The position numbers and the translations under genes are program-made. The notes under the pieces are model-generated. The model did not search any database. It was not told where the DNA came from and was given only the letters and a program-made list of their open reading frames with translations. A stretch of DNA of 64,000 nucleotides from Takakia lepidozioides (taxonomy: Eukaryota > Plantae > Bryophyta): positions 48,174,001-48,238,000 of the forward strand of contig CM060731.1 of NCBI GenBank assembly GCA_030704615.1, read 5' to 3'. Each line of letters starts with the position of its first letter. Position 1 is the stretch's first letter. Positions 27,539-61,313 of the stretch are shown here, piece after piece.

Positions 27539-28376
27539 TTAGGGGGGGGGCATTGGGCGGGAGATAGATGATCCCCGTCTCCCTGGGCTTGGGATTCGTT
27601 TTGTGAAGGGATTTGAAGGTTCGTCCCGGCTAGAAGCGTGTTGGGAGTCGAGGCATGTAGGAAGTAGTCATAAACAAAGACTTGGAAGGCAATTACGATT
27701 AAAGACGTAGAAAACCCATAAACAAAACGTAGGACTAGGATACGCAAATCGCCATGTGAAGTGGAGTTGTTAAGCTTTGCTTTACCGGTAGGAAGTTAGA
27801 CTATTTAGATCCGTGTAGAATAATAGAAAATTCTTTGTGGAGTAGCATTTAGAATTGGAGTGCAAATGAACAAGAATTGGATGTGAAATTGCACTATGGG
27901 GTTTGATAATTTGATAGAATTGGGTAGGATGCTAGAACGGAAGTAAATTCAGATAATGAGGATGATAATTGGTAGGAATGGGGTTATTAGGATAGATGTT
28001 AGCCCATTGAATCAGTGCTAGGTAGTTATGGTAGTTAAAGTAGGACAATATGAGTTCCGCTGAATCGATGTATTCATGGTCATTCGAGCGAGAGTGCCGA
28101 GGCCCTAGCACAAAAGATGCTAGTTTGTCGTTTTCAGTAGCTTAAGTAAGAGATAAGATGAATATGAGTAGTGTGATGAGACAAAGATCTGATGAAAGAC
28201 TCTGTAAGCTTCATGTTAATGTGATGAGATGTTGGAGTTTAATGGGAAGAATTTTGTGTGAAAGAAAAAGATGAGGATTATTTGATGAAGTGTGCAGATC
28301 AATACGAGAGGAATTTAATTGAGATGAATATTAAGACATTTATTGTTGAGAGACAATTAGATTTAGATATAGAGTT

Positions 28377-28461
28377 TGTCGTGCGCATACGTATCGCTAC
28401 ACAACTACATCGCTGTCCAAACCACACCACACATATATGCACAATAAAGTAGTCTGCCACA
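28377..28461 (-). repeat. Terminal repeat Y, copy 2 (85 bp, 3' terminus of element)
   Basis: Minus strand TGTGGCAG...GCACGACA; 2 mismatches to 28813-28897. Confidence 0.95.
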
Positions 28462-28462
28462 A

Positions 28463-28810
28463 TGATAAGAAAGAACTAAACTCCAATAACAAGAGAAACA
28501 CAAACCAACACCATCACTCTTTAAAATAGAAGTCGAGCCAGGGGCACCCCAAGCTATGGGGACTCCACCCCACAACAACCTATCCTCCCATCATAAACAC
28601 ACTCAGTTCTAAACGCATGCAGGAGCTCGGTCGCGCAGGCTCAACTCGAGAGAGATGAGCTGCGCGACTGACGCTCTCGTGAAGATAAGACGGTTCAGGT
28701 GTCAAACTAAACTTGACACCTGATTTAACACTTCACCTAAATCCAAGTGTTAAATACAAATAACTAGCTTTATTCTAGTTAGTTTCACACTGTGCTTATT
28801 TAACTTGACA
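28463..28810 (-). repeat. Terminal repeat X, internal copy (348 bp)
   Basis: Minus strand TGTCAAGTT...CTTATCA; about 4 mismatches to 44205-44552. Confidence 0.95.
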
Positions 28811-28812
28811 GC

Positions 28813-28897
28813 TGTCGTGCGCATACGTATCGCTACACAACTACATCGTTGTCCAAACCACACCACACATATATGCACAATAAAATAGTCTGCCACA
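28813..28897 (-). repeat. Terminal repeat Y, copy 1 (85 bp), directly after the PPT
   Basis: Joined to X through the palindrome gacagctgtc (28807-28816). Confidence 0.95.
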
Positions 28898-28908
28898 ATC
28901 GCCCCCCT
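28898..28908 (-). promoter_or_regulatory. Polypurine tract (plus-strand primer)
   Basis: Minus strand AGGGGGGCGAT immediately before the TG of repeat Y, downstream of the integrase ORF. Confidence 0.8.
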
Positions 28909-29156
28909 AGCTCGTGGATAGGTCCCTCTAACTCCAGATAGCTACAAGATGTAATAGCCACAGCCGTACTAAGTCCTCTATCACTGTCCCTATTGTACTC
29001 AAACTCTATTGACCAAGAGGCCGGGTACAAGAGTAGCCCCATCGTTAGTCGCCGTCTTGCAATCTGTGAACTTGAGCCAGGACCTCGTGTATTCAAGGTC
29101 TCCTGTAGCTTGGCCTTGCATTTCTTGTTAGCCTTCCATGGTTATATCCACTCCCA

Positions 29157-32100
29157 CTATCCAATGCAATGTGGACATAACCAATCCCCATCCGGAACCA
29201 TCTCAAGAGGTGGAGTCAAGCATCACATATGCCAACCTCTAGAGCATCGATCACACACCAGCATGGTGGCTACCCCTTTAGCAGACCCACACAACATGCA
29301 CCTCAAACTTGCAGATATCACTGCCAGGTTTGGGTCAATCCTGCCATCAACATTCGGAAGGTGACATGGCGCACAATTACGCACATGGTCCTTCCAAGTT
29401 ATGTCATCCCGACCCTCCAAGACCAAGACGCCTGAGGGCAAGACCTCTCGAACCCTGAAAATAACACGTCCTGCAGTCACATCCAAGGTTGTAGGAGCAG
29501 TCTGCTGCAGATAGACATAGTCACCAGGGTTGAATCTCCGAACCCCAGGACGATAGCCCCCACCACGTATGGTAGCATACCTCAACGTATCACGGTGTTG
29601 TGCAATGACAAGGTTCTCGAAAGCCATGTGCATGACTTTCTTGAACAACTCTGCACGCTGCTCACATGCACGTGCCCACACGTCCGGATCGTCAAGGTTA
29701 AGAACTGTAGCAGCTTCTCTGCGAATGGATGTAGGCAAATCCGGCTCTCGGCCAAAGAGAAGAAAGTATGGTGAGAAGGAGGCAAGTGATGCTTGCTTGC
29801 TGAACCTGTAGCCCATGGCTAACCAGGGTAACTGAAGGTCCCAATCTCCTAGGTGTCCCTTCTGCAAGCCATACTTGCGCAAACCTGTTTGAACAACTCT
29901 CTCTGCCAAGCCATCGGCCTCAGGATGATCCCGAGAAGCGGTGCGGTGGTCTATCAAGGCCTTGTCACACAAAGCCTGAAACTCCCCCAAGAACTCTCTC
30001 CCTTGGTCTGTGAGTACCTTAGCTGGAGCACCGAATCGGCTAAGCACACAATCCAAGAATGCATACGCAGCTCCCTCACTAGCCTTATCAGGCAATGGAA
30101 CCAATTCAATCCACTTGGAGAAGTGCTCCACCATCACCAACACGTACTTGTTGTGGCGCATGGTCAGTGGCAACGGCCCTGCGAAGTCAAGACTCCACCT
30201 GTAGCCCAATCCCATGATCGGAAGAGGGTGCAATTGTGGAGTAGGGGCGTTGAATGAAGCACGCACCCTGTCACACACCATGCACCTAGCCACAAATTGT
30301 TGCACCTCTGTGTGCATACCACGCCACCAATACTGCCCCTGCAGTAGGCTATGAGTGCGTCGCACCCCAAAATGCCCCAACTCCTCGTGGGCATGCCGCA
30401 CTAACCGTGCCCGCTGTGTTGGGTGAGGCACAATCCTCACTCGACCATCCTCCCACACTCGGAGCAGGTGTGTCCCCTCCCACTTGAACCTCTTGGCTCG
30501 TTGTAGGATCCGATCCCTCTCCTTGGCAGTCACAGTGGCTGCAGTGTCTCCAGTGCGGAGGTAGTCCAACACAACTGAATCCTCATGTATATCTTTGGCG
30601 CCACCTTGCTCATTGCTGGCCTCAGGGTCCTCAGACACTTGATCTACAGTCATCCCTGTTGCAGGTCCAACCTGGCCTTCCGCTGCCAAGATACACAGAA
30701 ATGCAGATGCATGCCATCCGGGCACCATCTCCTCGTCCGTCTCACCATGCCACCGAGCTCCAGTGTCATCCTGCTGGCTCGTGCATGGATTGCGACTCAA
30801 CCCATCTGCATTGCGATTGACCAAACCCGGTCGATGCACCACCTGAAAGTCATACTCTTGAAGGATGAGTGCCCACCGTGCAAGCTTCCCCGTAAGCTTG
30901 TCTGACTCCATCAACCACTTGAGTGGTTGGTGATCCGTGACAAGGGTGAAGAGATTGCCGTATAGATAGCACCTGAAGTGTGCCACGGCCCACACTGCAG
31001 CTAAGCATTCTCCCTCATATGAGCTATACTTAGACTCTGCAGCGTTGTTCGAGCGGCTAGCATAAGCCACTACGAACTCTCTTCCCTCATCATCCACCTG
31101 TGTGAGCACCGCTCCAAGCCCCAGCATGCTCCAATCTGTATGCAGCTGAAAAGGACGCCCCCTGATAGGTCGTCTCAAGATGGGCGCCGAGGTCAACCTC
31201 GCCTTGAGCTCTTGAAAAGCTTGTTCTTGCTCATCTTCCCACTGCCACTCCTGGTCCACCTTGGTCAGCTTGGTTAGAGCCTTTGCAATGGCACTAAATC
31301 CCTTAACAAACCGTCTATAATAGTTTGCTAACCCCATGAAAGCTCGAACTCGGCTCACATCCGTGGGGCGTGGAACCTGTGCAATGGACTCTACCTTAGT
31401 CTGCTGTACCCCCAATCCTCCAGGATATATCATGTGACCCAGATACTCAATCTGGTTGTGGAAAAACTTGCACTTTCCCGGATGTAACTTCAATCCGTGC
31501 GCCCTCAAGCGCTCAAATACCCCCTGAAGGTGTCTCTCATGCTCCTCCACCGTAGCACTAAAGATGATGATGTCATCTATGTAGCACCGAGCAAACTCCA
31601 CCCCTGCTAGAATCCTGTCCATGACTCTTTGAAACTCAGCGGGAGCGTTTTTAAGCCCAAATGGTAAGAACCGCCACTGGTATAGGCAATCCTTCCCGTG
31701 CTCATTGATCCCCCAGAATGCCGTCTTTTGCTTATCCGCCTCCTTGATCGGCAACTGGTGATATCCGGATCGTAAATCCAACGTGCTAAAGACCTTGGAA
31801 TGCCCAATGGCATCAAAGATCTCCTCTGGTGTCGGCATGGCATACCTATCGGACTTGGTCTGACGATTTACAGGCCGGTAATCACCGCACATACGTCTCT
31901 CCGTCCAATTGCCATAGACATCCTTCTTGGCTGGCATCACTGTGGCTGAAGCATACTCTCCACCAGAGAGCTCCACCAAACCTGCCTCCCAGAGATCTTG
32001 AGTCCTCATCTGAATCAAAGACCTCTCCATGTCACTGTATCTATAGGGTCTCCGAAAGATTGGCGTGTCAGTGGCCAACTCAATACGGATCTCTTGACCC

Positions 32101-32282
32101 TTCAGTGCTCCCAAGTCCTTCAAACTAAAGACAAAGCAATTCCTGTAAGCCCTCAGGAACCGCCGTATACGTGGTCTCTCTCCTCCGGTGACAATGGGTC
32201 CAATGTCAGGCTCCCAATTGTCCTCTATAACTGCAACCTTAAGTCCAGTGGGCTTAGAGGTAGAGGACGCGTCCCGTGGTTG
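29157..32282 (-). CDS. Gypsy Pol: reverse transcriptase, RNase H, DDE integrase, C-terminal PHD finger (one premature TGA inside the PHD)
   Basis: RT (LDLRSGYHQ, LPFGLKNAP, YIDD), RNase H (HTDWS, TDHQPL, ADGLSR), integrase HHCC plus SLDF/TDQG/AERVV. Reading through TGA at 29223 gives CMLC...CDRCSRGWHM*CLTPPLEMVPDGDWLCPHCIG*. 32124-32282 is open and in frame with the DNMT ORF. Confidence 0.95.
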
Positions 32283-34493
32283 CTATGCCGCAACCTCTTG
32301 AGCAGTACTCCCTGCCTGCTCATTCAATGACAAGGCCTCATCCTGCCCCATCATCTCATCATTGAGGACCTCATCAACCCGAGAAGAATCCCCAACCTCA
32401 TCCATCACAGCTGCATTGGCTGCCAACTCCCTCTGAACCTCGAGCACCTCCCACGTGTGCCATGGATGTCTACACCCCGTGGTCCTCACCAGCTCGCCCC
32501 CACTCGCTGCCTGTACCGTCTCGGTAGGCAGAGAGACCGTCAAGGGAAGTGCACTCCGCACTCTACGTTGCTCAGCCATAGCCAAGCTGATAATCCAGGT
32601 CAAGCAATTGAGATCCATTGCTTGCCCCAACACCTGACGACGTGATGCCTCAGAAAGAGAAGGCACTGCCGTGGTCCCAGTGGAAAACCCCATAGCCCGC
32701 TCTCGCTCGTCGGCATTAGGCTCCACTAACTGCTGCAACTGAGCATCCCATAGGAGGCCAGGTCCACCATCCCGAAAAGCATGGGATCCTGGGAAGCTGA
32801 GCAGTGTAGGTAATGCTGCTCGTGGTTGACCCACCCTGTTGACCACTGCCAAAGGCGAACGGTCATCGTGTCTCACACGTTGAGACTGTCTCCCTGTGTC
32901 CAAAATGCCATCCACGGTGAGGTGTGCTGACCGCTGCACCCCATCAAATGCACGCTTGAGTAGTGCGGGTGGCATCAAGTTAGTCCACCAAAGCCGTGGA
33001 CGATGAGCCCGTGACCCCACTGCGGCTACATCCAGCAACACTGCTGACCCAAGCCACGACCGGACTTGATGCACACTGGCCATCACCCTGGCCCGAGAAT
33101 CACCCATCAGTGGCACATTCTCCAAGATGTATGCTGGAGATACAGCTTGATGAAGTTGCAAGTAGCGCAAAATCCGCACCATCTCCCAAAACAGACCCGT
33201 CCTCGAGTCTCGCAATCCATTGCCATGCCCAGCTGATGAATGCCCTTGGCAGGGCCAACCTGCCACTACCAGATCAATGGAGCCAACCTGCTCCAAATCT
33301 TGCGCCCCCAGCAAGGAAATGTCTGCTGGCAAGGCTTGTTGGTATCCACGAACTGCAGACACTGGCAACAAAGCAGGGTACTGCTGTACCAACTGAGCAA
33401 CATGGCGCAGTGAGACGCGTCGTGCAGTCTCATCCCTCTCCACATACAGGTAACGCCTTACCCGCACACCTGCCTGTAGCACAGCAGCCAATCCGGTGCT
33501 GATCCCGCCAAACAAGTCCAGAAGGCAAATGCCTTCATCCGGATACTGCCACACAATAGGTGTGGTATCCAATGGTGACAACTGAGGTGGTCCTGGTGCA
33601 ATATCCGCACTCTCCTCCTCTCCTGACGGTACAAAAGCCTCTACCCAGGCTTGTTGCACCCGTCGATCAGCAACCTGCTGCAAATCCTTGCTCGTACCCC
33701 ACAATGGAGTGTGAGCAACCATGGCAGGCAACTCCGCCATACCATGCATGTCATCCTGCTCTGCTGGAGGTGACACATCTTCTGCATGGGCATTGCCTTC
33801 CAGCAACTCTCCAGGCCAACTAACTGCAGCTGTAAAGGCGGCTAGTGTTGGCATCTTGCCCCGTTGGGCAGCCGCAATACCCCCAATGAATGTCACAGGG
33901 AGCTGTGCACGACGACCATCCCCTGACTGCCATCCAGGCCTGTAGAATGCTGACTCCTCCCAAAAGTCCAGGGTGAAGCCCATGGGGTATAACACTGCCC
34001 CACCAACCAGGACATCGTAAGAGACCGCGTCTGTCACAATGGCCTTGGCTCGCATCACTGAGCCATCTGTAGGGTGATCCGGCTGCAGTCTAATGGCCAA
34101 CTGATGTCGTGTCATGCCCCGAGCCTGCTCTGATCCTCCCAGAGATGTCTGTATCTGGAAAGGACAAGGCTCCATATCCGCCTCCATGAGGCCCAAACCT
34201 GCAATAGCAGCTCTGCCCAACATCAGTGGCTGAGCTCCCGAGTCCAACAAGACCCGCTGTGGCCGGTACTTCTTGCCTGCCGGTCCACTCAAAGAGAAAA
34301 TGCCATCCTCTAACAAGACAACTCCAGGTGTCACCATGGCGCGCTCAAAGGCTGGCCTAGCTGGCAGCTCCGTAAACCTGCTGCAGCTTGCCAGGGCGCA
34401 GCCGTGGCAGTCTTGACCCTCAAATCCGAGGATCCCTCTGCCACTACACCTTCCACTAACTCCGCAGAAGATGAAGTGACCTCCCACTCTCAC
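32283..34493 (-). CDS. Aspartic protease followed by DNMT3-like C5 cytosine DNA methyltransferase domain (~32590-33533), N-terminal part of Pol
   Basis: Protease LLDSGA (34236-34244) and DVLVG. MTase motifs I LDLFGGI, II YVERD, IV AGWPCQG, VI LENVP, VIII HRPRLWWTN, IX ERERAMGF, X QVLGQAM, in canonical order. Confidence 0.95.
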   Translation of the reverse strand: MRVGGHFIFCGVSGRCSGRGILGFEGQDCHGCALASCSRFTELPARPAFERAMVTPGVVLLEDGIFSLSGPAGKKYRPQRVLLDSGAQPLMLGRAAIAGLGLMEADMEPCPFQIQTSLGGSEQARGMTRHQLAIRLQPDHPTDGSVMRAKAIVTDAVSYDVLVGGAVLYPMGFTLDFWEESAFYRPGWQSGDGRRAQLPVTFIGGIAAAQRGKMPTLAAFTAAVSWPGELLEGNAHAEDVSPPAEQDDMHGMAELPAMVAHTPLWGTSKDLQQVADRRVQQAWVEAFVPSGEEESADIAPGPPQLSPLDTTPIVWQYPDEGICLLDLFGGISTGLAAVLQAGVRVRRYLYVERDETARRVSLRHVAQLVQQYPALLPVSAVRGYQQALPADISLLGAQDLEQVGSIDLVVAGWPCQGHSSAGHGNGLRDSRTGLFWEMVRILRYLQLHQAVSPAYILENVPLMGDSRARVMASVHQVRSWLGSAVLLDVAAVGSRAHRPRLWWTNLMPPALLKRAFDGVQRSAHLTVDGILDTGRQSQRVRHDDRSPLAVVNRVGQPRAALPTLLSFPGSHAFRDGGPGLLWDAQLQQLVEPNADERERAMGFSTGTTAVPSLSEASRRQVLGQAMDLNCLTWIISLAMAEQRRVRSALPLTVSLPTETVQAASGGELVRTTGCRHPWHTWEVLEVQRELAANAAVMDEVGDSSRVDEVLNDEMMGQDEALSLNEQAGSTAQEVAA

Positions 34494-36474
34494 AGAGTGT
34501 TGCTGCTAGTCTGAACACTGCAGCTGGTCTTACCCCCGGCGTCGCAATCATGGTTGCCGAGAACAGTGGGGCTTGACACACAGAGGTGGCTGCCCCCAAT
34601 AACACACCGGCTGCACTAGCCTTGGTAGCAGGTGTCAGTGCTGCACGTGTAGCTCTCCCCAATGGCATAGAAACCTCCGCCTCGGTAACAGTCGGGCGAG
34701 AACTAGGTGCCATGGATGGCGTTGACACTGTCTCCGCCAAGGTGAATGACTGAGGCAGCCTCGCTTGACGGCTTGCCTCCCCACGTTGTGGATCCAACTC
34801 CACCTCTGCACCTCGTGGCTCAGGAACTTGTGCTGCTCCTCGAGTCACGGCTGCAGCAGACTCCACCTGCTCTAGTGGTAGTGCTGCTCCGCACATGAAT
34901 CCCATGCCTCCCATATCTCCTCCCTCAGGAGCAGGAGGTGGACCATCCCGCCTGGGAGCCGGTACCGCCTGAGCTATAGCCATGGCAGCGAGCCTCTGCT
35001 CTAGCTGCTGAAGCCGATTGGCCATGCCTTGGTCAACACCCTGACCTCCGCGTCCTTGGCCATGTGGAGCTTGCCCTTGGCCTGCACCTCGTGCCCGACC
35101 ACCTCGTCCTCTCTGGGCTGGTCCACCTCGCCCCCGGCCACCATTATTCCCTTGGAACTGGCCTGGGCGCAACTCAGGATGCAAGTCATAACACTGGGCA
35201 TCTCCATGCCCATACTTGCCACAATGCCCACACTGCAATTGTGCAGGCTGTGCTTGTGCCGGCCTTTTGCCACTCTCTGGGCAATCTCTCTTGACATGGG
35301 GTCCTCCACATGTCCAACATATCACCCCTGGTTGCTGTTGGCTTGCAAAAGATGCCACGGGCCTCTGCACCTGAGGTCCCCTGTAAGCTCCATGGAACTT
35401 GGGCTGGGCAACCTTGCCCCCCTGACCACGCTATTGGGCAGCCCCTTGTGCCTGTGGGCTGACGGCTGTGCCCCGTGCAGGCATGTCCTTGCCAAATCCA
35501 ATTGTAACAACTCGCTCCTCCACCATGTTGAGCTCAATCCGCTCAGCCAGCAGAAACACATCTGCTAATGTGGGTTGGGCTGCTTGTAACAGGGTTGCAT
35601 CTCGCACCCTTCTCTTGAGCTCCTTGTCCAGAATTCCATACCAAAACTGGATTGCCTGAGCTTCAGTAACCCCTTGGGTCACACTTATCAAGCGCCTCAT
35701 ACGAGTGTACGCCTCTCGCAGGCTCTCACTGGGTTTGCGCTGGAAGTCTTGCAAACTTCGCAGCTTCTCTGTCCGTACACCTTGGTAGTTCCTCCGCAAC
35801 TCCTGGAAGAACTCCACCACCAGGTTGAATCTAGGCACATGTGTTGTAGTCGTGGCAGGAGGAGTAGTAGCACCTTTTGAACTGGTACCACCTGCAGAAG
35901 TACCAGCACTACTTGCTCCACTACTAGTGCTGGCAATGGGAGCTACTGGTACTGATGCAGCTACTGGTCGCGTCGTGCCTCGAGTAATGAAGACGTAGTC
36001 AGGTGACCAATACATCCTCCACTCCTCAATCTCTGCTTCATGTCCTCGCCTGAACTCGTGGTAATCGTCCATAGGCGGGCCTTCCAAATGCTGAAACAGT
36101 CCCTTCCACGCCATGAATGGGGTGAATAGCTGTGGATTGCGCATCTGCTGCAAATCACACCAGCTGTCAAACTCCTGGATAAAGTCATCCAACTCGATTG
36201 TGCCCACAGCTCCAGAGTACCTACGAGGCCCCTTGGTAGCTCCATACATCTCCTCGATGTCGTCCCACAACAATGGCGAATGAAACTGCACACCTGTTGA
36301 TGAAGCCTCCGAGTTTGTGTCTGACTCTACAGTAATTGAGGGTGGCGGTGAAGGTGGTCTGAACCGAATACCTCGTCTTGTGAACCCACTCTCACTGTTA
36401 CTGCCTGTAGCCGTACTCCCCTCAAAACCCTTGGGTAACTCCGTAATGACACTCACAATGTGCACCTCCTCCAC
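34456..36474 (-). CDS. Gag with two zinc knuckles (one CAG>TAG stop at 35431-35433)
   Basis: Capsid-like FQRKPSESLREAYTRM...QFWYGIL; CWTCGGPHVKRDC and CGHCGKYGHGDAQC; RGG-rich tail. The two track ORFs are in frame, and the second gag copy has CAG at the stop position. Confidence 0.9.
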
Positions 36475-36993
36475 GTGACACTATAAGGCTCTAGTACTAA
36501 TCTAATAGTGACACGGGTGGGCACCTGTTGCAGTTTAAGGGTCATATCCCAATGGCTCAGGGCACCTGCACCTGCATCCACCGCAAGAACTCCTATGGTT
36601 GGCTGGTCATCAACCCAGCCTCACCATAGAAGAAACACTGGTGGTCTTGCTGGTCATCACTCCAGCCTCACCACCGACAGCATACTCTAGGATTGACCGG
36701 TGATCAAATCCGGCCTAATCCCTATGAAAGCAAGCGCCCACACAAAACCAACATGGTGCACAGTCAAGCATGCAGGTGTTGGGGGGGATCCAAACACAAG
36801 AAATCAAAACATCAACACCCCCACACCAAAATCCAGCTGCAATGCTGATCCTGCAGAATAGCCCAGCCCAAAACCCCGGACTGACTGGCCTCCACCAAGA
36901 GAGGCTTTGGCAACTACAAGTACAAAGTAATGAAAATAGTAAAGAGATGGAGGGGAAGAATAGAAGCCCGACCAAGCAAGATCTAATCCTGAT

Positions 36994-37743
36994 CTATGCT
37001 ATCAACTGCCAGACTTCTCTCAAAGTGCCTCGCTCTGCATGATGGTAAGGTATAGGAGGTATATCTATGTCCAGAAACCTGCCACTAACCTTGTCCCAAG
37101 CTACAGTAGCTCGCTCTAACCAACCCTCCTCCTCTTTCTGCCAGGTAGAGACAAAGCAATACTCCCCTATCTCCCGCTCACTGAATACTAAAGAAAACAA
37201 AGGTAGGGTCTGATAGTCTCTCAACTCAAAAGCTTTGAGACGGTTGCGGGTGTCCTCATTGCGAATGACTGCATCTCCTTCACGCACAACAAACATGTCA
37301 TTGCTGATGAACCCCCGCTCGTGGTTGCCCTGTACAGAGCGTATACGGCTGCAACCATGTCTGATTGCACAAACTTGTGTAGCTCCTGCTCCTCTGCTCC
37401 AGTACACCACGGCCTTGTGGCTGAACACCTTGGTCCCCGGGGCTGTCTTTGGCTGTGTTCCAAGCCTAGCTTTCACCCACTTTGGTATTTCACCTACAGC
37501 TGCAGAACTGCTGGCTCCAACAGAGTTCTGACTGTCCAAGGCGATATTGAGGCCCTCAACGCCAACTACAACAGTTTGTTGTCCAATACTAATGCCTGAC
37601 TCCCAGTATGCAATCAACTCGTCCAACTGTTCTCCACTCAAATCAGTCTGAGTTCCTTGGGAAACATAAATCTTGTCCCCTTTGGTGCACAGGCTAAGAG
37701 AAGAGACTTGCCCTTCAATCACGTCATCATTTCCCCCAGCCAT
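36994..37743 (-). CDS. Extra 249-aa ORF upstream of gag, unknown function
   Basis: ATG-initiated, uninterrupted, same strand as gag, globular-looking composition. It lies in a ~1.05-kb block absent from the second leader copy. Confidence 0.55.
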   Translation of the reverse strand: MAGGNDDVIEGQVSSLSLCTKGDKIYVSQGTQTDLSGEQLDELIAYWESGISIGQQTVVVGVEGLNIALDSQNSVGASSSAAVGEIPKWVKARLGTQPKTAPGTKVFSHKAVVYWSRGAGATQVCAIRHGCSRIRSVQGNHERGFISNDMFVVREGDAVIRNEDTRNRLKAFELRDYQTLPLFSLVFSEREIGEYCFVSTWQKEEEGWLERATVAWDKVSGRFLDIDIPPIPYHHAERGTLREVWQLIA

Positions 37744-40045
37744 ACAAGGAGTACATCCCCAGATTTATCTCTCATGTAGACTAGAACAGGTTCTAGAAAC
37801 AGGATTGTGTATCTTTCATGGCACACTCACACTCTAAAAATTCCATAGATTTTTAGCAGAGTCCCAAAAACAAAAACCAGGTCTAGATAGGTAGATTTCC
37901 CCTTTCTGCAGCTATCCCCTCAAAAACTGAGTCAAACGGAGCTCATTTGACGAAGATATGACCAACCAGGCTCTTTAAACATAACACCTTTTTCTTTTCT
38001 TTCCCCTTTTTTTTAAAAAAAAAAGACAAAACAAATACAAAGAAAACTTTAAAAAAAAAAAAAAAAAAAAATACTTGTCTTGGTTTCCTGTTCCCTGGTT
38101 ATCTACGGGTTCCCGAGGCCGTTCCCCCAACTCTATTTTCCATCAGTAAGGCCTGACGGGAAGGAGGGCCAACTCTTTCCACTTACACAGACATGCCAAA
38201 GGAGCAGGCCCTGACCAGCAAAAGGTTCGCCCACATGCATATCCCCCTGTGTAATGTTCTCTACTCATGCTTGCAATCAACCAACTTCAAAGCGTCCAAC
38301 ACCAAGCCTCGTTAAAGGGTCCAAAGCGCCTCGTTTATCTACAATGAAGGTGCACACCCTGAATAGTAACGGGTTAGCTCCCCTCCAGAGACGTAACCGG
38401 CCTGAATAGAAGCAAGAAACCAATCCTCTTTGATCTGCTCTTCACAGAACAGGAGAAATCTGATCGCCGTAATGCGTTGACACCACGACACGAGGCGTCG
38501 TCGAACGTCCTCCCTTTCTACTTTACAGCCACAGCCGCTCCTTCACAGCAACGATGCACTCTCCTTACACAGCGCCGCTACACACTGTCTTTTCCTCTAC
38601 TGGCTTCACAGACATGCGTCTGCTTTACAACACAATATTATTGCAAGATCTGCCACTCACGGTCGCAAAGACTGAAAGTCTTGATACTACAACAGTGACA
38701 TTGCCTGCACACAAGCCATAGCCACTCCTTCACATCGTACATGAGCAAAACCGCCGCACCTTGACACCTTCATGCGAGAAACTCCAAGTGCATAAAAGCT
38801 TGGACAGGTTCATTCATGGGAGAGTGCTTGCAAGGCACGGTGGCCTCAATCTGAAGCCACACTATTGTAGGTTATGCCAGCATCATCCAGACCGTCCCTG
38901 CATCTTGGATATGCATCCTCCAGCAGGGGCCGCTGCCTCCATTGCTCGACACTTGGGTTATATGCTCAGCCAGACCAGCAATGCCCTTGGCTGCTGCTAG
39001 CCCAGGCCTCAATGCTCCTCCAACGCTCTTAACAGTATGACAGGGAGCTCGCATTCCGATTCCAAAAAGACAAGAGGCCACGACTTGCAGGATTTGGCAC
39101 CTCACCTGGCAATAAACTTGCCGCTGGAATTGACGGGCCACTTACTCAACTCCCAAAGGGTACCCCGGTTGATCCAGCATCAGGCCTATCAATTACTGCC
39201 CTCATAAAACCGCAACTCTGCTCACGTCGTGCCAGTGTAACTGGCCTCGCCGTTATGCCCCAGGAAGTCGTAGCGGAACATGACGTGCTCACGTTAGTGA
39301 CCAAGGGCCTGAATCAGCTCCAAGACGACCTCAAACCAAAAAACAAGGCCACGACTCACTAATGGCAGAAATCAACAAGCGACTAGCCGCTCAGGCCATC
39401 TCCATCAAGACAGATATCAAAGAGGATTGAGTGGCCATGGAAAATAGGGTCTCAATCATCATGGCTGCCCGGCAAGAAGGACATCACACTGACCTCCTGT
39501 CGCTCCAGTATTCCATCACCAAGAATCTAGGTGCTAACTTAGCACTCTTCTACGAGCATGCAAATAAGGTACTTGAAACGCTACCCACCCCCCCCATGCA
39601 GGCTCAATCAACCCACAGGGCAAGGCGCGGCCATTATCGCAGAGAATGCACACCCAAAGGTTCACTAGCCGCTGGCTCTACTTGAACTCCCATTCGCTGC
39701 TCTCATTCACCGCAGCGGGCTCTATGGGGGCCCTAACATCACACCACCACCAGCTGCCATCGACATATCCTCCACAGGCGACGGCGCCCCTACAGTGGAA
39801 ACACACCTCACCAATGCCAACAGGAATCTGGACATACCACCATTACTCTCTCTTCTACCTATACCCCCGGAGTCCCACCATTGCGACTGAGGATGTGAGA
39901 CAAACTCCAGCTAGCGCCATTCTATGCTCATTGCTTGAGCTGTGTACAAGACCATGACCATCTATATTATAATAGTGCTTAAAAAAAACAAAAACATCAT
40001 ATCTAGTTTAGCACTGGAAAACTAGATAGAGTGATCTCTCTCGAG

Positions 40046-40402
40046 TGATAAGAAAGCTTGAAAGGACACACACTCTCAACACAAGAAACAGGTTATCCAT
40101 CAACATCACTCTTTGAAAACATAAGTCGAGCCAGGGGCACCCCAAGCTATGGGGACTCCACCCCACAGCAACCTGTACCCCTACATAAGCACACTCAAAT
40201 CTAAACGCATGCAGGAGCTTGGTCGCGCAGGCTCAACTCGAGAGAGATGAGCTGCGCGACTGCCGCTCTCGTGAAGATAAGACGGGTCAGGTGTCAAACT
40301 AAACTTGACACCTGATTTAACACTTGACCTAAATCCAAGTGTTGAATACAAATAACTAGCTTTATTCTAGCTAGTTTCACACTGTGCTTATTTAACTTGA
40401 CA
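40046..40402 (-). repeat. Terminal repeat X of a second, diverged family member inserted into gag of the first
   Basis: Same TGTCAAGTT start and CTTATCA end with a diverged PBS-proximal part. It abuts gag sequence (ccttggtcaacacc) at 40403 with no Y repeat. Confidence 0.9.
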
Positions 40403-42324
40403 CCTTGGTCAACACCCTGACCTCTACGTCCTTGGCCATGTTGAGCTTGCCCTTGGCCTGCACCTCGTGCCCGGCCACCTCGTCCTCTCTGGGCTGGTCC
40501 ACCTTGCCCCCGGCCACCATTGTTCCCTTGGAACTGGCCTGGGCGCAACTCAGGATGCAAGTCATAACACTGGGCATCTCCATGCCCATACTTGCCACAA
40601 TGCCCACACTGCAACTGTGCAGGCTGTGCTTGTGCCGGCCTTTTGCCACTCTCTGGGCAATCTCTCTTGACATGGGGTCCTCCACATGTCCAACATATCA
40701 CCCCTGGTTGCTGTTGGCTTGCAAAAGATGCCACGGGCCTCTGCACCTGAGGTCCCCTGTAAGCTTCATGGAACTTGGGTTGGGAAACCTTGCCCCCCTG
40801 ACCACGCTGTTGGGCAGTCCCTTGTGCCTGTGGGCTGGCAGCTGCATCTCGTGCAGGCATGTCCTTGCCAAATCCAATGGTAACAGTTCGCTCCTCCACC
40901 GTATTGAGCTCAATCCGCTCAGCCAGCAGAAACACATCTGCTAATGTGGGTTGGGCTGCTTGTAACAGGGTTGCATCTCGCACCCTTCTCTTGAGCTCCT
41001 TGTCCAGAATTCCATACCAAAATTGGATTGCCTGAGCTTCAGTAACCCCTTTGGTCACACTTATCAAGCGCCTCATACGAGTGTACGCCTCTCGGAGGCT
41101 CTCACTGGGTTTGCGCTGGAAGTCTTGCAAACTTCGCAGCTTCTCAGTCCGTACACCTTGGTAGTTCCTCCGCAACTCCTGGAAGAACTCCACCACCGGG
41201 TTGAATCTAGACACATGTGTTGTAGTCGTGGCAGGAAGAGTAGTAGCACCTTTTGAACTGGTACCACCTGCAGAAGTACCAGCACTACTTGCTACACTAC
41301 TAGTGCTGGCAGTGGGAGATATTGGTACTGATGCATCTACTGGTCGCGTCGTGCCTCGAGTAATGGAGACGTAGTCAGGTGACCAATACATCTTCCACTC
41401 CTCAATCTCTGCTTCATGTCCTCGCCTGAACTCGTGGTAATCGTCCATAAGCCTGGATAAAGTCATCCAACTCGATTGTGCCCACAGCTCCAGAGTACCT
41501 ACGAGGCCCCTTGGTAGCTCCATACATCTCCTCGATGTCGTCCCACAACAATGGCGAATGAAACTGCACACCTGTTGATGAAGCCTCCTAGTCTGTGTCT
41601 GACTCTGCACTAGTTGAGGGTGGAGGTGAAGGTGTTCTGAAACGAACACCTCGTCTGGTGAACCCACTCTCACTGCTACTGCCTGTAGCCGTACTCCCCT
41701 CAGAACCCCTGGGTAACTCCGTGATGACACTCACAATGTGCACCTCCCCCACGTGACACTATAAGGCTCTAATACTAATTCTAATAGTGACATGGGTGGG
41801 CACCTGTTGCAGTTTAAGGGTCATATCCCAGTGGCTTAGGGCACCTGCACCTGCATCCACCGCAAGAACTCCTATGGTTGGCTGGTCATCAACCCAGTCT
41901 CACCATAGAAGAAACACTGGTGGTCTTGCTGGTCATCACTCCAGCCTCACCACCGACAGCATACTCTAGGATTGACCGGTGATCAAATCTGGCCTAATCC
42001 CTATGAAAGCAAGCGCCCATACAAAACCAACATGGTGCACAGTCAAACATGCAGCACACTCACACTCAAAAAATTCCATAGATTTTTAGCAGAGTCCTAA
42101 AAACTAAAACCTAGATAGGTAGATAGGTAGATTTCTCCTTTCTGTAGGTCCCTGTGCAAGTTTTGGGTCAAACGGCCTTGGTAGGCCAAAGTTATGGCCA
42201 AACAGGCTCTATCTAATTTAGATTAGATCAAAGAACGAATTTCTTTTAATTTTTCACACCCAAAACGTTGTCGCCATCAAAAACTGTTCCCTGGTTATCT
42301 ACGGTTTCCCGAGGCCGTTCCCCT
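40403..42324 (-). pseudogene. Second, truncated gag plus leader (outer family member)
   Basis: Near-identical to 35027-36775 and 37821-38126, with a ~100-bp deletion at ~41450 causing a frameshift. Confidence 0.9.
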
Positions 42325-42500
42325 CGCACTGTGAGCACACTACTGCCCCATTTCCGGTGCAGTTTGAGCATAGAATGCTAGTGGCTTTACTTGGAGGCAT
42401 GGACTATGATGCCTGGACGCACACACGCCCCCGACCTGTTCTACACTGCGGAGGAGCACCATCACTGCATTTCCGAGCGCACTCCACAGCAGCAGTCTTC

Positions 42501-42503
<3 letters not shown>

Positions 42504-42546
<43 letters not shown>
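42504..42546. repeat. (GA)n microsatellite
   Basis: Pure GA dinucleotide run. Confidence 0.95.
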
Positions 42547-42548
<2 letters not shown>

Positions 42549-42838
42549 ATGGCGGGACTTACAACAATAGCACAGGGCATCACAACGTCCTTGGCATGAG
42601 CGGCATGGCGTGGGTGCCCTCAGATGCAGCTCACAGTAAGGGGCGATCTTGCATGGAGCAACCTCCTCTGTTGCACCAACTGTGCGCCGCCGAGAAGTGG
42701 CTCATCTGGTGGGAGCGACCTCAGGATATGCAGCAGCTACTGCTAGCACCTGTGGTGGAGAGCGGGGTTGGCGCGCTCCACTACGTAGTGAATGCCTGGA
42801 AGTCTAGTACACCACAACACTCTCTCTCTCAACCTGCC

Positions 42839-43045
42839 CTTAGAAAGAAAACCATTCAAAGTGATCCCTCCCACTGCATTTGTCTCCGCAGCGTTTTTAT
42901 AAATTGGATCCTCCCATGGGCTGCCACAAAATTGCAACAATCCATGTGTCTCTCTTTCATTGTCAGAACCACCAGAACTGCATGGTTGGAGGCGGCTGTT
43001 GAGAAAAGCTCCTCCAGCTCCTGAGAACGCAGTGCACCATCCCCT
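42839..43045 (-). pseudogene. Captured fragment of a mitochondrial Rho GTPase (MIRO) gene, second EF-hand region
   Basis: DGALRSQELEELFSTAA, then an intron-like spacer ending ttttgtggcag, then PWEDPIYKNAAETNAVGGITLNGFLSK. This resembles the plant MIRO motif L..xE.E.LFSTAP.SPW...Y..AAE....GG.....FLS as I recall it. Confidence 0.7.
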
Positions 43046-44189
43046 CTTTGAGAATCTTGGACTGCAGACTGATGTGCAGGGCCCTTCTTCAGATGTGCAA
43101 GCTGTTTCATTGACAGCCCCTGTGGAAGTCGACCCACAAAGCTTCATGCAAAGACAGCCCACCGAATCTTGATTTCCTTTTCGAAACCGACTGTATGGTG
43201 CGGATGCCTTGTTTCATTCTTTGAATCTATGTACCTCTTCTTCCTCTTCTTCCAGCACTTGCAGAATTTCACATAAGGCACTTTTGTGCTCCCTTTGGTG
43301 TTGAAATCCTTTTGGAATGTTGAAGTGTCGGTGGAATATCGGTGCCAATGTATGGCCCGTACACAGTTCAGATTTCGTGTCAAAGACTGCTTCCAACACC
43401 TCCCTCAAGGTGAGACCAACCCTGCCCTGAAACGCGAGGACAGCCTCAGCTTCGTCTGATATGAAGTAGACTTTTGACATGTAAAAAGGAGAATCAACAC
43501 CCTCCTCCAGCCGTGCCTACTGCAATGTAATCACAATGTAGTCACAGACACCAACATTCTCTCCTTCGCCACGCATCTTCGCATAGTTCACCATCGGCTA
43601 GGGAGTTGAGCCAGCATTGGAGGATTCATAGTTGGGAGGCATCCGTTTCTTTGCCGCCATGATCTTATATGCTTGTCTTTTCCTTAGCTCCTACTCGTAG
43701 CCGATGTCGAGAAGGCCAGGTCAGGTTCTGCTACGTGCTCACGATAGCCGGATCTCTGATCGTCAAAACAGATTGCTTTGCTCGGCCCTCAGTCCGTTAG
43801 TTGCGTAGGATATCACACTGCGAAGTCATCAACGTAATTCCTGCCCATCATCTGGCAGTAAACTACTTCTCCCGCAGGCCCTGCCTTGTACAATCGTAAT
43901 CATGAATGCCAATGACGACACAGTGTCTATAGCCGCACCCCAGCAAGCTGTTTTCCCCCGTGAGTTCATAAGTTGCTAAGTGGTGATCACAAGTAGAGCG
44001 GCAGCTCCGCCTCTCCTCATAGGCTCAAATCATCAAAAAACAAACAGATGGCATCGTCTCGCCCCACCTACACTTGCACACCCTTCCAAGCATTGCTCAC
44101 CTTCTTTCAACAAATCGCTTCTCTCACTTTTAAAACAAAAACCACAAGTGCTAAAACTAAACTCACCTCTGGCACTCACAGATGCAAGC

Positions 44190-44204
44190 CTCATCTCTCT
44201 CGAG
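44190..44204 (-). promoter_or_regulatory. Non-tRNA primer-binding-site candidate, complementary to a loop inside repeat X
   Basis: Minus strand CTCGAGAGAGATGAG directly after X; perfect inverted copy at 44387-44401. A 12-nt core is conserved at 40034-40045. Confidence 0.7.
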
Positions 44205-44552
44205 TGATAAGAAAGAACTAAACTCCAATAACAAGAGAAACACAAACCAACACCATCACTCTTTAAAATAGAAGTCGAGCCAGGGGCACCCCAAGCTATG
44301 GGGACTCCACCCCACAACAACCTATCCTCCCATCATAAACACACTCAGTTCTAAACGCATGTAGGAGCTCGGTCGCGCAGACTCAACTCGAGAGAGATGA
44401 GCTGCGCGACTGACGCTCTCGTGAAGATAAGACGGTTCAGGTGTCAAACTAAACTTGACACCTGATTTAACACTTGACCTAAATCCAAGTATTAAATACA
44501 AATAACTAGCTTTATTCTAGTTAGTTTCACACTGTGCTTATTTAACTTGACA
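44205..44552 (-). repeat. Terminal repeat X, 5'-terminal copy (348 bp)
   Basis: Starts TGTCAAG at the element end next to TSD AGTT; no Y repeat precedes it. Confidence 0.95.
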
Positions 44553-44657
44553 AGTTCTAATCGCGACATAGCAATTCAATTGTGTGCTTTCCCCAGCGAA
44601 CCTTAGAACTAATTGATCATCTGTTAGGATTGATTCTAGTTTTATTCTACATCTTTT

Positions 44658-46941: not shown

Positions 46942-47595
46942 TGTAGAATAATAGAAAATTCTTTGTGGAGTAGCATTTAGAATTGGAGTGCAAATGAACA
47001 AGAATTGGATGTGAAATTGCACTATGGGGTTCGATAATTTGATAGAATTGGGTAGGATGCTAGAACGGAAGTAAATTCAGATAATGGGGATGATAATTGG
47101 TAGGAATGGGGTTATTAGGATAGATGTTAGCCCATTGAATCAGTGCTAGGTAGTTATGGTAGTTAGAGTAGGACACTATGAGTTCCGATGTATTCATGGT
47201 CATTCGAGCGAGAGTGTCGAGGCCCTAGCATAGAAGATGCTAGTTTGTCGTTTTCAGTAGCTTAAGTAAGAGATAAGAAGAATATGAGTAGTGTGATGAG
47301 ACAAAGATCTGATGAAAGACTCTGTAAGCTTCATGTTAATGTGATGAGATGTTGGAGTTTAATGAGAAGAATTTTGTGTGAAAGAAAAAGATGAGGATTA
47401 TTTGATGAAGTGTGCAGATCAATACGAGAGGAATTTAATTGAGATGAATATTAAGACATTTATTGTTGGGAGACAATTAGATTTAGATATAGAGTTCTAA
47501 TCGCGACATAGCAATTCAATTGTGTGCTTTCCCCAGCGAACGAACCTTAGAACTAATTGATCATATTTTAAGATTGATTATAGTTTTATTCTACA
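46942..47595 (+). repeat. 3' LTR of the outer element (654 bp)
   Basis: TG...CA ends, near-identical to the reassembled 5' LTR. Confidence 0.95.
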
Positions 47596-58109: not shown

Positions 58110-59456
58110 TTAGCTGGCCCTCTCTTTCGTACGCAGTAGAACTCTTCCGACTCGGTTGGTGGAGTTTTCCTCTTTCCAGTGACTGCTTGAAACATGAGAA
58201 GATGTCACACGAATATTTGTATCTTCAGATTCAGACTCGTGATCGGAAAGATCAATGTAGGCCGCCCCTATGGGTGGAGCTTTCCTCTTTCCACTGCTTG
58301 AAACAGTCTCTTGAGAAGATGTCACACGAATATTTGTATCTTCAGATTCAGACTCGTAATCGGAAAGATCAATGTAGGGCGCCCCTTTCATAGACCTAAC
58401 ACCACCTGACTCATGTTGAACAGTCATGTACAGATTACCTTCTGTCTTCTTCTGCACCTCTCCATATGAAGCGCCAGATTCACTGTCGAAGGTGCTACTA
58501 GTGGAGTCCCCGCAGGATTCGTCGCTGGTGGAGTCGCAGGATTCGCTGCTGGTGGAGCAGCAAGATTCAACGCCTTGAGCGGGTCTCATTTGCTGGAAAG
58601 CGTGCTTGTCCAATTCTGCAGCTTGACAAGGATACCGACCAGTTAAAGCTTCGACAGACTCACAGTCTGAAAGATCGATGTAGAGAGTAGGCCGAGTTGT
58701 TCCTGAAGCAGATTCACACTCCGAAAGATCGATGTAACAAATATGTCGAACACCAGTGCCACTAGTTGCATCATCATCTTCTGCATCAACAGTGTGCAAG
58801 GGAACTCCTTTCTTCATCAACGTGCAGCTCAATTGCGCCGCTGCACACGAATACTCCCCACTTGATTCTTCACAGTCATATCCCTCCGAAGCTAAAGCTC
58901 CAACACCACCCACGTTATCCATATTCATGCCTACTTGAGCGCTGCGATCATCATCTTCTGCATCAACAGTGTGCAAGGGAACTCCTTTCTTCATCAACGT
59001 GCAGCTCAATTGCGCCGCTGCACACGAATACTCCCCACTTGATTCTTCACAGTCATATCCCTCCGAAGCTAAAGCTCCAACACCACCCACGTTATCCATA
59101 TTCATGCCTACTTGAGCGCTGTGATCATCATCTTCTGCATCAACAGTGTGCAAGGGAACTCCTTTCTTCATCAACTTGCAGCTCCATTGCGTCGCTGCAC
59201 ACGAATACTCCCGACATGATTCTTCACATGAGTCATATCTCTCCGAAGCAAAAGCTCCAACACCACCCACGTTATCCATGTTCATGCCTACTTGAGCGCT
59301 GTGATCATCATCTTCTACATCAACAGTGTGCAAGGGAGCTCCTTTCTTCATCAACTTGCAGCTCCATTGCGTCGCTGCACACGAATACTCCCGACATGAT
59401 TCTTCACATGAGTCATATCCCTCCGAAGCAAAACCACCCACGTTATCCATATTCAT
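58110..59456 (-). CDS. Acidic tandem-repeat protein of unknown function with four YIDLS-acidic motifs
   Basis: 448-aa open frame across repeats whose indels are multiples of 3; coding status unproven. Confidence 0.45.
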   Translation of the reverse strand: MNMDNVGGFASEGYDSCEESCREYSCAATQWSCKLMKKGAPLHTVDVEDDDHSAQVGMNMDNVGGVGAFASERYDSCEESCREYSCAATQWSCKLMKKGVPLHTVDAEDDDHSAQVGMNMDNVGGVGALASEGYDCEESSGEYSCAAAQLSCTLMKKGVPLHTVDAEDDDRSAQVGMNMDNVGGVGALASEGYDCEESSGEYSCAAAQLSCTLMKKGVPLHTVDAEDDDATSGTGVRHICYIDLSECESASGTTRPTLYIDLSDCESVEALTGRYPCQAAELDKHAFQQMRPAQGVESCCSTSSESCDSTSDESCGDSTSSTFDSESGASYGEVQKKTEGNLYMTVQHESGGVRSMKGAPYIDLSDYESESEDTNIRVTSSQETVSSSGKRKAPPIGAAYIDLSDHESESEDTNIRVTSSHVSSSHWKEENSTNRVGRVLLRTKERAS

Positions 59457-59477
59457 GCCTACTTGAGCGCTGTGATG
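58768..59477. repeat. About four tandem repeats of ~177-180 bp
   Basis: Unit catcatcttctgcatcaacagtgtgcaaggga...ccacccacgttatccatattcatgcctacttgagcgctg. A second ~120-bp pair lies at 58195-58390. Confidence 0.95.
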
Positions 59478-61313
59478 ATTCGAGTACTGTATCTAGATTC
59501 AGCCGGAGGCAAACATAAGTGCTGGTCCAAAGCAAGAATGCTCACTGAAAGAGAACACAGAACAGAGTGTCCAAAAGTATGGGGCACCCAACAAATAGGG
59601 TAGCAAATGCTCTCTACGAAGCCACCTTTCCACTTTTAATAGATAGCTTTTTGCAGCTGGGTGAAAACTTTTCCTTCAAGATATCTCTAAATTGGGCAAA
59701 AGAGTCTTTACAAGTTCTGTGTGTATATTTTGATGAGGGCTAAGTTATTTCTTGGAGCTTCCCGCTGCCAACACGCGCCAGATTCACAGCGTAGGGAAGG
59801 TTCCACATTTTTCTCCTTGTAAGGGAATTGTGAGCTGTCCGCTTTGAGGGTTGGGATTTGGATTGAGAGAGGATGGCATGGGTTTCTCGTTTTCTCCCTC
59901 CAACTCTACTTAGATTCCGAGTTGTCAGATGGTCGCAGAAACCGGACGAACTGAATCTGAAAATGGGTTCTCTCCTCCAACCCTTCCATTTCAGGTGCCC
60001 AGTGAAAGATTATTGCAGAAAACAGGCAAGAGAGGAATCCAAAAGTTGAGTTTGAGGAACCAATTCGATGTTCGCGTTGGAACTAAATCCAGAAGTGTGA
60101 CACTTCGCACCCAATACACTGTTTTATCAGCAGAGATGCGCCAGCAACAAGCGATCCTTAGAGCGGTACAGGTTGCTATCCATTCTTCTGGCTCACCGGA
60201 GTCCCGCCATAGCGGAGTCTGTGATGTTCAGATGTGTACCTATTATCCTTGTAAAGCAAGGATAGGAAAACATCTCTCTCACTGTGGCAGATAGAGACAT
60301 TCAGATAAAATTCTCGCAAATGCTACCGCCGCCATTCAAGCCAACCTTGGAGAGAAGAGTAGACAGCTAAACACCGAGCCCTTGTCCTAGGTGATGCAAC
60401 CTGGCCAATCTTAGGAATCTCTTGAAGGCCACCAAGTAGGTATGAAGAATTTGGGGGAATTGAGCAAATTAGGGGTCCACAGTCTTTGAAGAAAATATGT
60501 GAAGAAGAGCCATGTTATAGATCTGCGCCGCTGAAGCTCAACAAGTCGAACAAATGCACAAAATCCTCCAAGTTTGTGTGCCCATAACAAGGTTAGATTC
60601 AAAGTGCATGTGTAAGACAGTAGTTGGCTGTGTCTTTCAGAGTTAAGAGCCTCTGCTGTTCGAAGAGGATGACATAATAGTAACACTACCATACAATAGG
60701 AATCTAAAAATGTTCAACTGAAATGCCTATGTGGTGTATTGAGGGTACTATGTATCCGCCCCACTCTAAGACACATTTCTCTTTGTGAAAGTCTGTAATA
60801 CTGTACAGTTCAGCTACTATATGTCTGACATTGCCCCAGTCAACCAAAATGAGGGTGGCCTCATCCTAAATATGTGTGTAGGTGAATGTCTCAGTCTGCA
60901 TCTCTGCCTACAATGTCTACTAAGAGTGCTGTATAACCAAAACAGTGGCAGCTTATAGGTGAGACTACAATTTCTGTACAGGTTCAGAATCCCATGCCTC
61001 GCAAGTGGAGTATCATGGCACCCTTGACACTGTGTGTATATGAGAATATGTGCAGCTCCAACATTGCAGTGCTAATTGATCATTCTGCCATCCGGAGCAT
61101 GGTTAATTCATGGTGCACATTTGCTGCTCATGCTCTTACTCCAGAGCAAATTATAAACACTTGGTTGATGTCTTACTCAGCAGCCGGGGCTAAATGTCCT
61201 GATGTCACCTCATCCTGCAATGCAAAGACAATCAAACATTGTTGTCAGACCAAAAGTGTTTCTTCATGGATCTCACATGCAGTATTGAAATACTCATCTG
61301 GAATTCAAGTCCT

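Follow-up and report, generated by a model that had tools for sequence, protein, structure and literature searches.

To our knowledge, self-priming of reverse transcription has been demonstrated experimentally only for fission-yeast elements, and everywhere else it has been inferred from sequence. It is established for Tf1 and has been inferred for Tf2, Tj1 and the fungal and vertebrate Tf1/sushi elements (PMC4600332, PMC7175516). In Tf1, the primer-binding site (PBS) anneals to bases 1–11 of the RNA, and RNase H cleaves directly after them, between bases 11 and 12 (PMC7175516); cleavage of the primer is reported to need structured RNA (work cited in PMC4600332 and PMC7175516). A survey of plant genomes predicted self-priming for 12% of the LTR elements, including 83% of the Tcn1 chromoviruses of mosses and clubmosses, which carry 5-bp target-site duplications (TSDs) and a chromodomain in 100% of cases each and have a mean length of ~6.4 kb, and 89% of the Ty1/copia lineage TAR (Neumann et al. 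2019, PMC6317226). Neither Marchantia nor Sphagnum is mentioned in its text or accessible supplements (PMC6317226). The same survey describes half-tRNA primed elements, each lineage of which has a conserved PBS that corresponds to an internal segment of tRNA-Met or tRNA-Ile (PMC6317226). KnitGypsy-Dnmt3 from Klebsormidium nitens is a gypsy element with a Dnmt3-type methyltransferase inside its polyprotein (de Mendoza et al. 2018, PMC5890265), and priming is not discussed in the paper that reports it (PMC5890265).

We analyzed a stretch of 64,000 nucleotides from the genome of Takakia lepidozioides (the window), which harbors a Ty3/gypsy-type retrotransposon on its minus strand, and the site under study is the 5′ end of this element. 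A first-pass annotation had proposed there that the element primes itself as Tf1 does. Our comparison points the same way: the element probably primes its own reverse transcription with the 5′ bases of its own RNA, in the manner of Tf1, and not with a host tRNA. The mechanism itself is already known, and what is new is very probably its occurrence in this plant gypsy lineage, which would extend self-priming to a plant gypsy lineage outside Tcn1 and TAR, the two for which it was already predicted.

As in the self-primed Ty3/gypsy elements of fission yeasts (Tf1 and Tf2 in Schizosaccharomyces pombe, Tj1 in S. japonicus), the PBS directly follows the 5′ LTR and complements the presumed 5′ end of the RNA, a helix adjoins the predicted cleavage site, and the PBS has no tRNA match, which is judged here by the absence of TGG. 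The duplex is 12–17 bp long, compared with 11 bp in Tf1, and Tf1-type cleavage and priming are predicted here. Unlike these yeast elements, the integrase ends in a PHD finger and not in a chromodomain, the target duplication is 4 bp, a DNA methyltransferase is part of the polyprotein, the repeats are split (A1...B1-A2-B2), and most relatives carry a mimic of the PBS upstream of the primer. With Tcn1 and TAR, the element shares the character of a plant LTR element whose PBS lacks tRNA complementarity and matches its own LTR, and Tcn1 also occurs in mosses; it differs from both in its 4-bp TSDs, PHD finger, DNA methyltransferase and family length of about 10–11 kb. The chromodomain and the 5-bp TSD, both traits of the Tf1/sushi-Tcn1 clade, are absent, and four independent insertions have TSDs of 4 bp, namely AGTT in the window, GGTT in L001, AGGT in L002 and CCGG in L003 (loci in Table 1). 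The half-tRNA primed elements (copia, Ty5 and the plant Osser, Bryco and Bianca) likewise have a PBS without a TGG start, but the PBS studied here varies and follows the element's own repeat. The split A1-internal-B1-A2-B2 layout is shared with the DIRS/Ngaro/PAT-type elements, which combine it with a tyrosine recombinase; the present element differs from them by its DDE integrase (rve) and 4-bp TSDs. Its nearest described relative is KnitGypsy-Dnmt3, which likewise holds a methyltransferase in the polyprotein.

Structure of the Element and Its Split Repeats

Copy alignment and self-BLAST revealed a 348-bp unit, termed A here and X in the first-pass annotation, with three copies in the window (X44, X40 and X28), as shown in Table 1. 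In sense orientation, the unit starts with TGTCAAG and ends with CTTTCTTATCA, the last bases being TTATC(A). X44, the 5′ copy (A1), carries the promoter, the primer site and U5, while X28, the 3′ copy (A2), holds an unused copy of the primer site at 28644–28659 and is not followed by a PBS.

The element sits in one copy of another dispersed repeat (27814–28376 plus 44553–44651), and an uninterrupted copy of this repeat at 46942–47595, 97% identical and 2.4 kb away, served as the empty site. Comparison with the uninterrupted target (47480–47500) placed the inserted DNA at 28377–44551, with the 4-bp duplication AGTT on either side. It also ruled out a plain LTR structure for X, in which the 87 bp repeated around X28 would be a target duplication. 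In sense order, the integrated element reads A1 - PBS - internal - G-run - B1 - GC - A2 - B2, that is, with split direct repeats.

A PBS is defined by its position, and a polypurine plus-strand primer is expected directly before U3. The G-run AGGGGGGCG upstream of B1 is likely to be this plus-strand primer (PPT) and would mark the start of U3, and an identical G-run precedes B1 in L001, L002 and L003. Since the G-run precedes B1 and the complementary 16-mer follows A1, B marks the start of U3 in terms of reverse transcription and the last base of A that of U5, and the candidate PBS therefore lies exactly at the place where a minus-strand primer is required to anneal. From the same two positions, the LTR at the level of reverse transcription would be B.GC.A, so that the ends belonging to the DDE integrase form the conserved internal palindrome GACAGCTGTC.

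The split-repeat layout is conserved from liverworts to Sphagnum (Table 1). Integrated copies start at A and end at B, not the reverse, and their integration ends read TGTCA...CGACA; L002 has one extra unit (B-A-B-A-B). The distant relatives L014 (7262–7420), L011 (8440–8500) and L008 (16251) keep the G-run and the B-GC-A palindrome, which is extended to CATGACAGCTGTCATG in L014, a metagenome contig, and takes the variant form GACAGTTGTC in L008. The arrangement resembles what a 2-LTR circle would give if it were cut open within one of its LTRs.

The gag region occurs twice in the window, at 35027–36775 and 40403–42054, with 96% identity, and X40 directly adjoins the first gag copy (40403–42054). 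The X40 copy looks like a second copy that was nested in the gag of the outer copy and then lost its 3′ part by recombination. A (GA)n microsatellite (42505–42547) lies within the long leader of the element.

Table 1. Features of the Takakia element (window coordinates) and corresponding sites in related loci (coordinates of each locus).
Feature	Coordinates	Strand	Sequence	Remarks
5′ repeat unit A1 (X44)	44205..44552	-		348 bp; alignment of three copies, self-BLAST, empty-site comparison
TATA-like motif	44423..44429	-	TATCTTC	28 nt upstream of the 5′ edge of the primer complementarity; putative function
Hairpin around primer site	44372..44410	-	GTCGCGCAG (44410–44402) / CTGCGCGAC (44380–44372)	encloses primer site; −30.9 kcal/mol, z −4.9
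Self-primer site	44386..44401	-	CTCATCTCTCTCGAGT	exact complement of PBS; covariation in 8 elements
TGAGTC motif	44380..44385	-	TGAGTC (TGAGCC in relatives)	immediately 3′ of primer; conserved
Partner of TGAGYC motif	44274..44281	-	GGCTCGAC	conserved; GGCTCG at 44276–44281
PBS	44190..44205	-	ACTCGAGAGAGATGAG	abuts U5 end; straddles end of 5′ repeat unit
Second 5′ repeat unit X40	40046..40402	-		93% identical to X44; copy alignment, self-BLAST
Second-copy primer site	40236..40248	-	ATCTCTCTCGAGT	
Second-copy PBS	40034..40046	-	ACTCGAGAGAGAT	13 bp duplex; sequence downstream unrelated to that of X44
C-5 DNA methyltransferase protein	32283–34493	-		PF00145, E 4e-12
Pol	29223–32123	-		Pfam order RVT_1, RT_RNaseH, Integrase_H2C2, rve
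G-run	28900..28908	-	AGGGGGGCG	immediately upstream of B1; likely plus-strand primer (PPT)
Repeat unit B1	28813..28899	-		87 bp; joined via GC to A2, giving palindrome GACAGCTGTC
3′ repeat unit A2 (X28)	28463..28810	-		99% identical to X44
Repeat unit B2	28377..28463	-		3′ terminus of integrated element (...CGACA), beside 4-bp duplication AGTT
Split-repeat element, L001	6826–17657			
Split-repeat element, L002	6855–16429			
Split-repeat element, L003	5007–17662			
Split-repeat element, L007	7222–18921			
Split-repeat element, L009	7913–17113			
PBS / primer site, L001 and L007			ACTCGAAGAACTG / CAGTTCTTCGAGT	
PBS / primer site, L003			ACTCGAAGAACT / AGTTCTTCGAGT	
PBS / primer site, L002			ACTTAGAGAACT / AGTTCTCTAAGT	
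PBS / primer site, L009			ACTCAAAGAACTATGTT / AACATAGTTCTTTGAGT	
PBS / primer site, L006			ATTCAAAGAACTATGTT / AACATAGTTCTTTGAAA	

Complementarity between the PBS and the Repeat of the Element

On the minus strand, the 16 nt at 44205–44190 are the exact complement of 44401–44386. The first-pass annotation had stated that X is not followed by TGG, as a tRNA-type PBS would be, and that the sequence found there complements 15 nt inside X. Both statements are correct: X44 continues as CTCGAGAGAGATGAG (44204..44190), which a scripted check identified as the exact reverse complement of 44401..44387, and the terminal A of X (44205) also pairs with T 44386, bringing the duplex to 16 bp. A 12-nt core was likewise said to be kept in the second copy, and indeed 40046..40034 pairs there with 40248..40236 over 13 bp while the flanking sequence diverges.

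The 12-mer core CTCGAGAGAGAT has five matches in the window against 0.02 expected from shuffles, and all five are the three primer sites and two PBS sites of the element copies. The expected number of exact 12-mer complements arising by chance somewhere in a 340-nt repeat is ~2e-5. As the core is CT/GA-rich and the same element contains the (GA)n microsatellite, the complementarity might be taken for an inverted repeat that arose by chance or from low-complexity (GA)n-like sequence; the excess of matches speaks against such an origin, as do the relatives, whose cores at the homologous position are non-repetitive, e.g., CAGTTCTTCGAG. We consider this origin hardly credible, and chance complementarity is refuted by the comparative data below.

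Covariation of Primer and PBS in Liverworts and Sphagnum

Relatives were located via the methyltransferase ORF, and their genomic loci were then compared. Six of them have a complete 5′ repeat unit with downstream sequence, of which three are from Marchantia polymorpha (L001, L003 and L007) and one each from Calypogeia fissa (L002), Sphagnum fallax (L006) and S. jensenii (L009). Together with X44 and X40, these make up the eight elements of the covariation analysis, which represent about five lineages, and the pair counts are not eight independent events. Outside this comparison stood the loci with a missing 5′ end, from Klebsormidium (L012), Closterium (L013), a metagenome (L014) and GCA_0178840xx (L010 and L011), as well as those with no usable 5′ repeat plus PBS (L004, L005 and L008). 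The PBS of L004 is unusable because of a 1001-bp tandem duplication (4778–6778). Such an exact or near-exact 1001-bp duplication is also present in L007 (13269–15269), and both, which belong to the Marchantia assembly GCA_003032435.1, look like assembly artefacts.

In all six relatives, the sequence after the 5′ unit complements a site 110–170 nt into the unit, while the letters differ. The complementarity starts at the repeat/PBS boundary in 8/8 elements, and at positions 1–11 counted from this boundary the pairing is Watson-Crick in 88/88 cells, with two-sided changes at nine positions. Pairing decays beyond position 12–16, and the duplexes are 12–17 bp long across the elements. The own PBS is the best fit for each primer site; in the window, the primer site fits its own PBS at 13/13 positions and those of other genera at 4–7/13. 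Even the single-base difference between the two Sphagnum copies, GAA versus GAG, is mirrored in the PBS as TTC versus CTC. L006 shows an A-A mismatch at the 3′-terminal position of the primer and may be a dead copy.

Compensatory changes across subfamilies had been named as a check on the first reading. When RNAalifold was run on the alignment from primer to PBS, the primer:PBS pairing formed the closing helix, and 10 of its 13 pairs were changed on both sides across the eight elements, with 99% of the cells paired. None of 500 shuffles matched the observed pairing values, and partners slid by 1–3 columns paired in 34–49% of the cells. The Tf1-like reading is thus supported by six diverged relatives that keep the complementarity, their PBSs differing from one another and yet being matched by their own repeat. 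If the element is self-primed, the PBS is copied from the primer via the plus strand in each cycle, so the agreement between the two is partly regenerated mechanically; the covariation therefore supports priming and is no independent measure of selection.

Land-plant tRNAs are nearly invariant. With differences at 9/11 core positions between genera, the PBS varies more than a conserved host tRNA would allow. No tRNA gene was detected by ARAGORN in the window or in 13 fetched loci. Nevertheless, a host small RNA or tRNA fragment might be the real primer, with the internal site merely masking or regulating the PBS, and the 12-nt PBS core does not differ between the two Marchantia subfamilies, which a shared host primer would also predict. 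This reading is unlikely, given that every PBS tracks its own repeat and that 0/8 PBSs start with TGG (the starts being ACTCGAG, ACTTAG, ACTCAAA or, in L006, ATTCAAA); the Rfam scan of 44100–44600 also returned nothing but a chance-level snoRNA match (E 0.53).

Promoter, Leader Fold and Predicted Course of Priming

In 8/8 elements, the 5′ edge of the complementarity is preceded at 26–31 nt by a TATA-like motif, the aligned variants being TATCTTC, TATATTC, TATACAG, TATACCA and TATAAAA/TATAAAG, and in three elements (X40, L003 and L002) the complementarity begins at an A after a pyrimidine. This spacing and the pyrimidine-A step place the putative transcript start near the 5′ edge of the primer. 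The genomic RNA would accordingly be expected to begin at or within a few bases of the first nucleotide of the primer, as in Tf1, and the 5′ end of the window RNA would fall at or near A 44398.

These positions also bear on the possibility that the pairing has a purely structural role in the leader, for example in packaging, dimerisation or translation control, while priming takes place at another site or by a different route. Retroelement leaders often contain long-range stems, and a fold alone cannot separate a primer duplex from a structural stem. However, the 3′ edge of the complementarity coincides in 8/8 elements with the repeat/PBS boundary, which is the position required of a minus-strand primer if it is to set the end of U5, its 5′ edge is found at TATA + 26–31 nt, and the repeat is followed by no other conserved candidate PBS. 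A purely structural role is therefore quite improbable, and self-priming is the preferred reading.

When the leader RNA of the window copy was folded from the primer start to the PBS, as the first-pass annotation had recommended, its 5′ end was placed on the PBS (−79.7 kcal/mol, z −4.0), and the RNA of L001, folded over the same span, also had its 5′ end on the PBS (z −3.6). The TGAGYC motif next to the primer has its partner GGCTCG ~100 nt downstream, and the two form helix 2 of the RNAalifold prediction, with 6 pairs that are 100% paired and either invariant or altered by G-U changes only. This predicted 6-bp helix stacks on the primer:PBS duplex exactly at the predicted cleavage point, which recalls the structured RNA of Tf1 primer cleavage. 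A further predicted hairpin between TGAGYC and GGCTCG contains four covarying pairs.

From these sites and folds we infer the transcript start, the cleavage and the priming itself. Within the 5′ repeat unit, transcription would start ~30 nt past the TATA-like motif and no more than 3 nt from the 5′ edge of (CUC)AUCUCUCUCGAGU. The first 13–16 bases of the RNA would fold back over ~180 nt of U5 and pair with the PBS ACTCGAGAGAGAT(GAG) abutting the repeat end, and the conserved adjoining helix of UGAGYC with GGCUCG would stack on the primer:PBS duplex. The RNase H of the element would then cut the RNA between ...GAGU and UGAGYC, presumably after T 44386 in the window copy, and the freed 3′-OH would be extended through U5 to yield minus-strand strong-stop DNA. 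The lineage offers an unusually clean comparative case, in that one homologous primer/PBS pair can be traced through liverworts and a moss, with compensatory changes at most positions and a conserved helix at the predicted cleavage site.

Hairpin and PBS Mimic Upstream of the Primer

The first-pass annotation had described the primer target as enclosed by a hairpin with an inner CTCA/TGAG pairing, and the fold bears this out (Table 1). It had also supposed a regulatory switch between this hairpin and PBS pairing, which was not borne out for the window copy, where the predicted fold still pairs the primer with the PBS when the upstream arm is included. The 5′ arm lies between the TATA-like motif and the presumed transcript start, and since it is upstream of that start, it is probably absent from the 5′ end of the RNA.

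Most relatives (Marchantia, Calypogeia and Sphagnum) carry, between the TATA-like motif and the primer, 10–13 nt that repeat the PBS exactly, and this PBS mimic forms a perfect hairpin with the primer. Being identical to the PBS and paired with the primer, the mimic co-varies with both, so that three sites (mimic, primer and PBS) change together. In the window element, the mimic has decayed to 8/10 positions and a different, GC-rich stem brackets the primer. When the mimic was added to the L001 RNA, the predicted fold shifted the primer from the PBS into a local hairpin, suggesting that in the relatives such a mimic, positioned directly 5′ of the primer, can hold the primer away from the PBS.

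A transcript that starts at the primer would lack the mimic at its 5′ end but carry it at its 3′ end, and plus-strand strong-stop DNA would carry it as well, since both contain U3. With the mimic upstream of the presumed start, the primer would be accessible at the 5′ end of the genomic RNA alone, and the mimic may thus mask the non-priming copies of the primer. With such a gate, the primer would stay hidden in the hairpin both in the RNA 3′ copy and in the plus-strand strong-stop DNA, so that mis-priming would be prevented and the new PBS kept from folding back on the primer. We put forward, as a tentative suggestion, that a U3-encoded PBS mimic gates the primer and that, in combination with a B.GC.A LTR at the level of reverse transcription and integration ends at the internal palindrome, this may constitute a distinct replication variant among integrase-encoding LTR elements.

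Coding Content and Distribution of the Lineage

The same-strand ORFs downstream of A1 encode a gag-like protein, a methyltransferase-bearing protein and Pol. The window Pol has the domain order of Ty3/gypsy elements (Metaviridae), RT - RNase H - integrase, and its best PDB match is Ty3 Gag-Pol (E 4e-92). According to Pfam, most close relatives have the C-terminal PHD finger of the integrase, which gives a weak match in the window copy (E 0.019), and Pol contains no chromodomain. No tyrosine-recombinase family was reported among the eight minus-strand ORFs scanned.

The nearest proteins are from Marchantia, Calypogeia, Riccia and Sphagnum, with 55–78% identity, and a K. nitens protein that shares the domains of the window Pol matches it at 48% identity. 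Of the best 120 Pol matches listed, those with an organism name are from the green lineage, except for two from an arachnid. Relatives with both methyltransferase and PHD domains were found in liverworts, Sphagnum, Klebsormidium (KnitGypsy-Dnmt3), Closterium and metagenome contigs, and thus the gypsy lineage bearing a DNA methyltransferase reaches beyond Klebsormidium. Apart from its priming, the lineage is remarkable for a DNA methyltransferase of its own, a PHD-finger integrase and circularly permuted repeats. As the PBS is not of the tRNA type and the repeats are not paired identical LTRs, LTR finders that require both will miss or mis-delimit these bryophyte elements.

The window also contains two tandem arrays, one of four 303-bp units that are 62–70% alike (14319–15527) and one of four 177-bp units (58770–59480).
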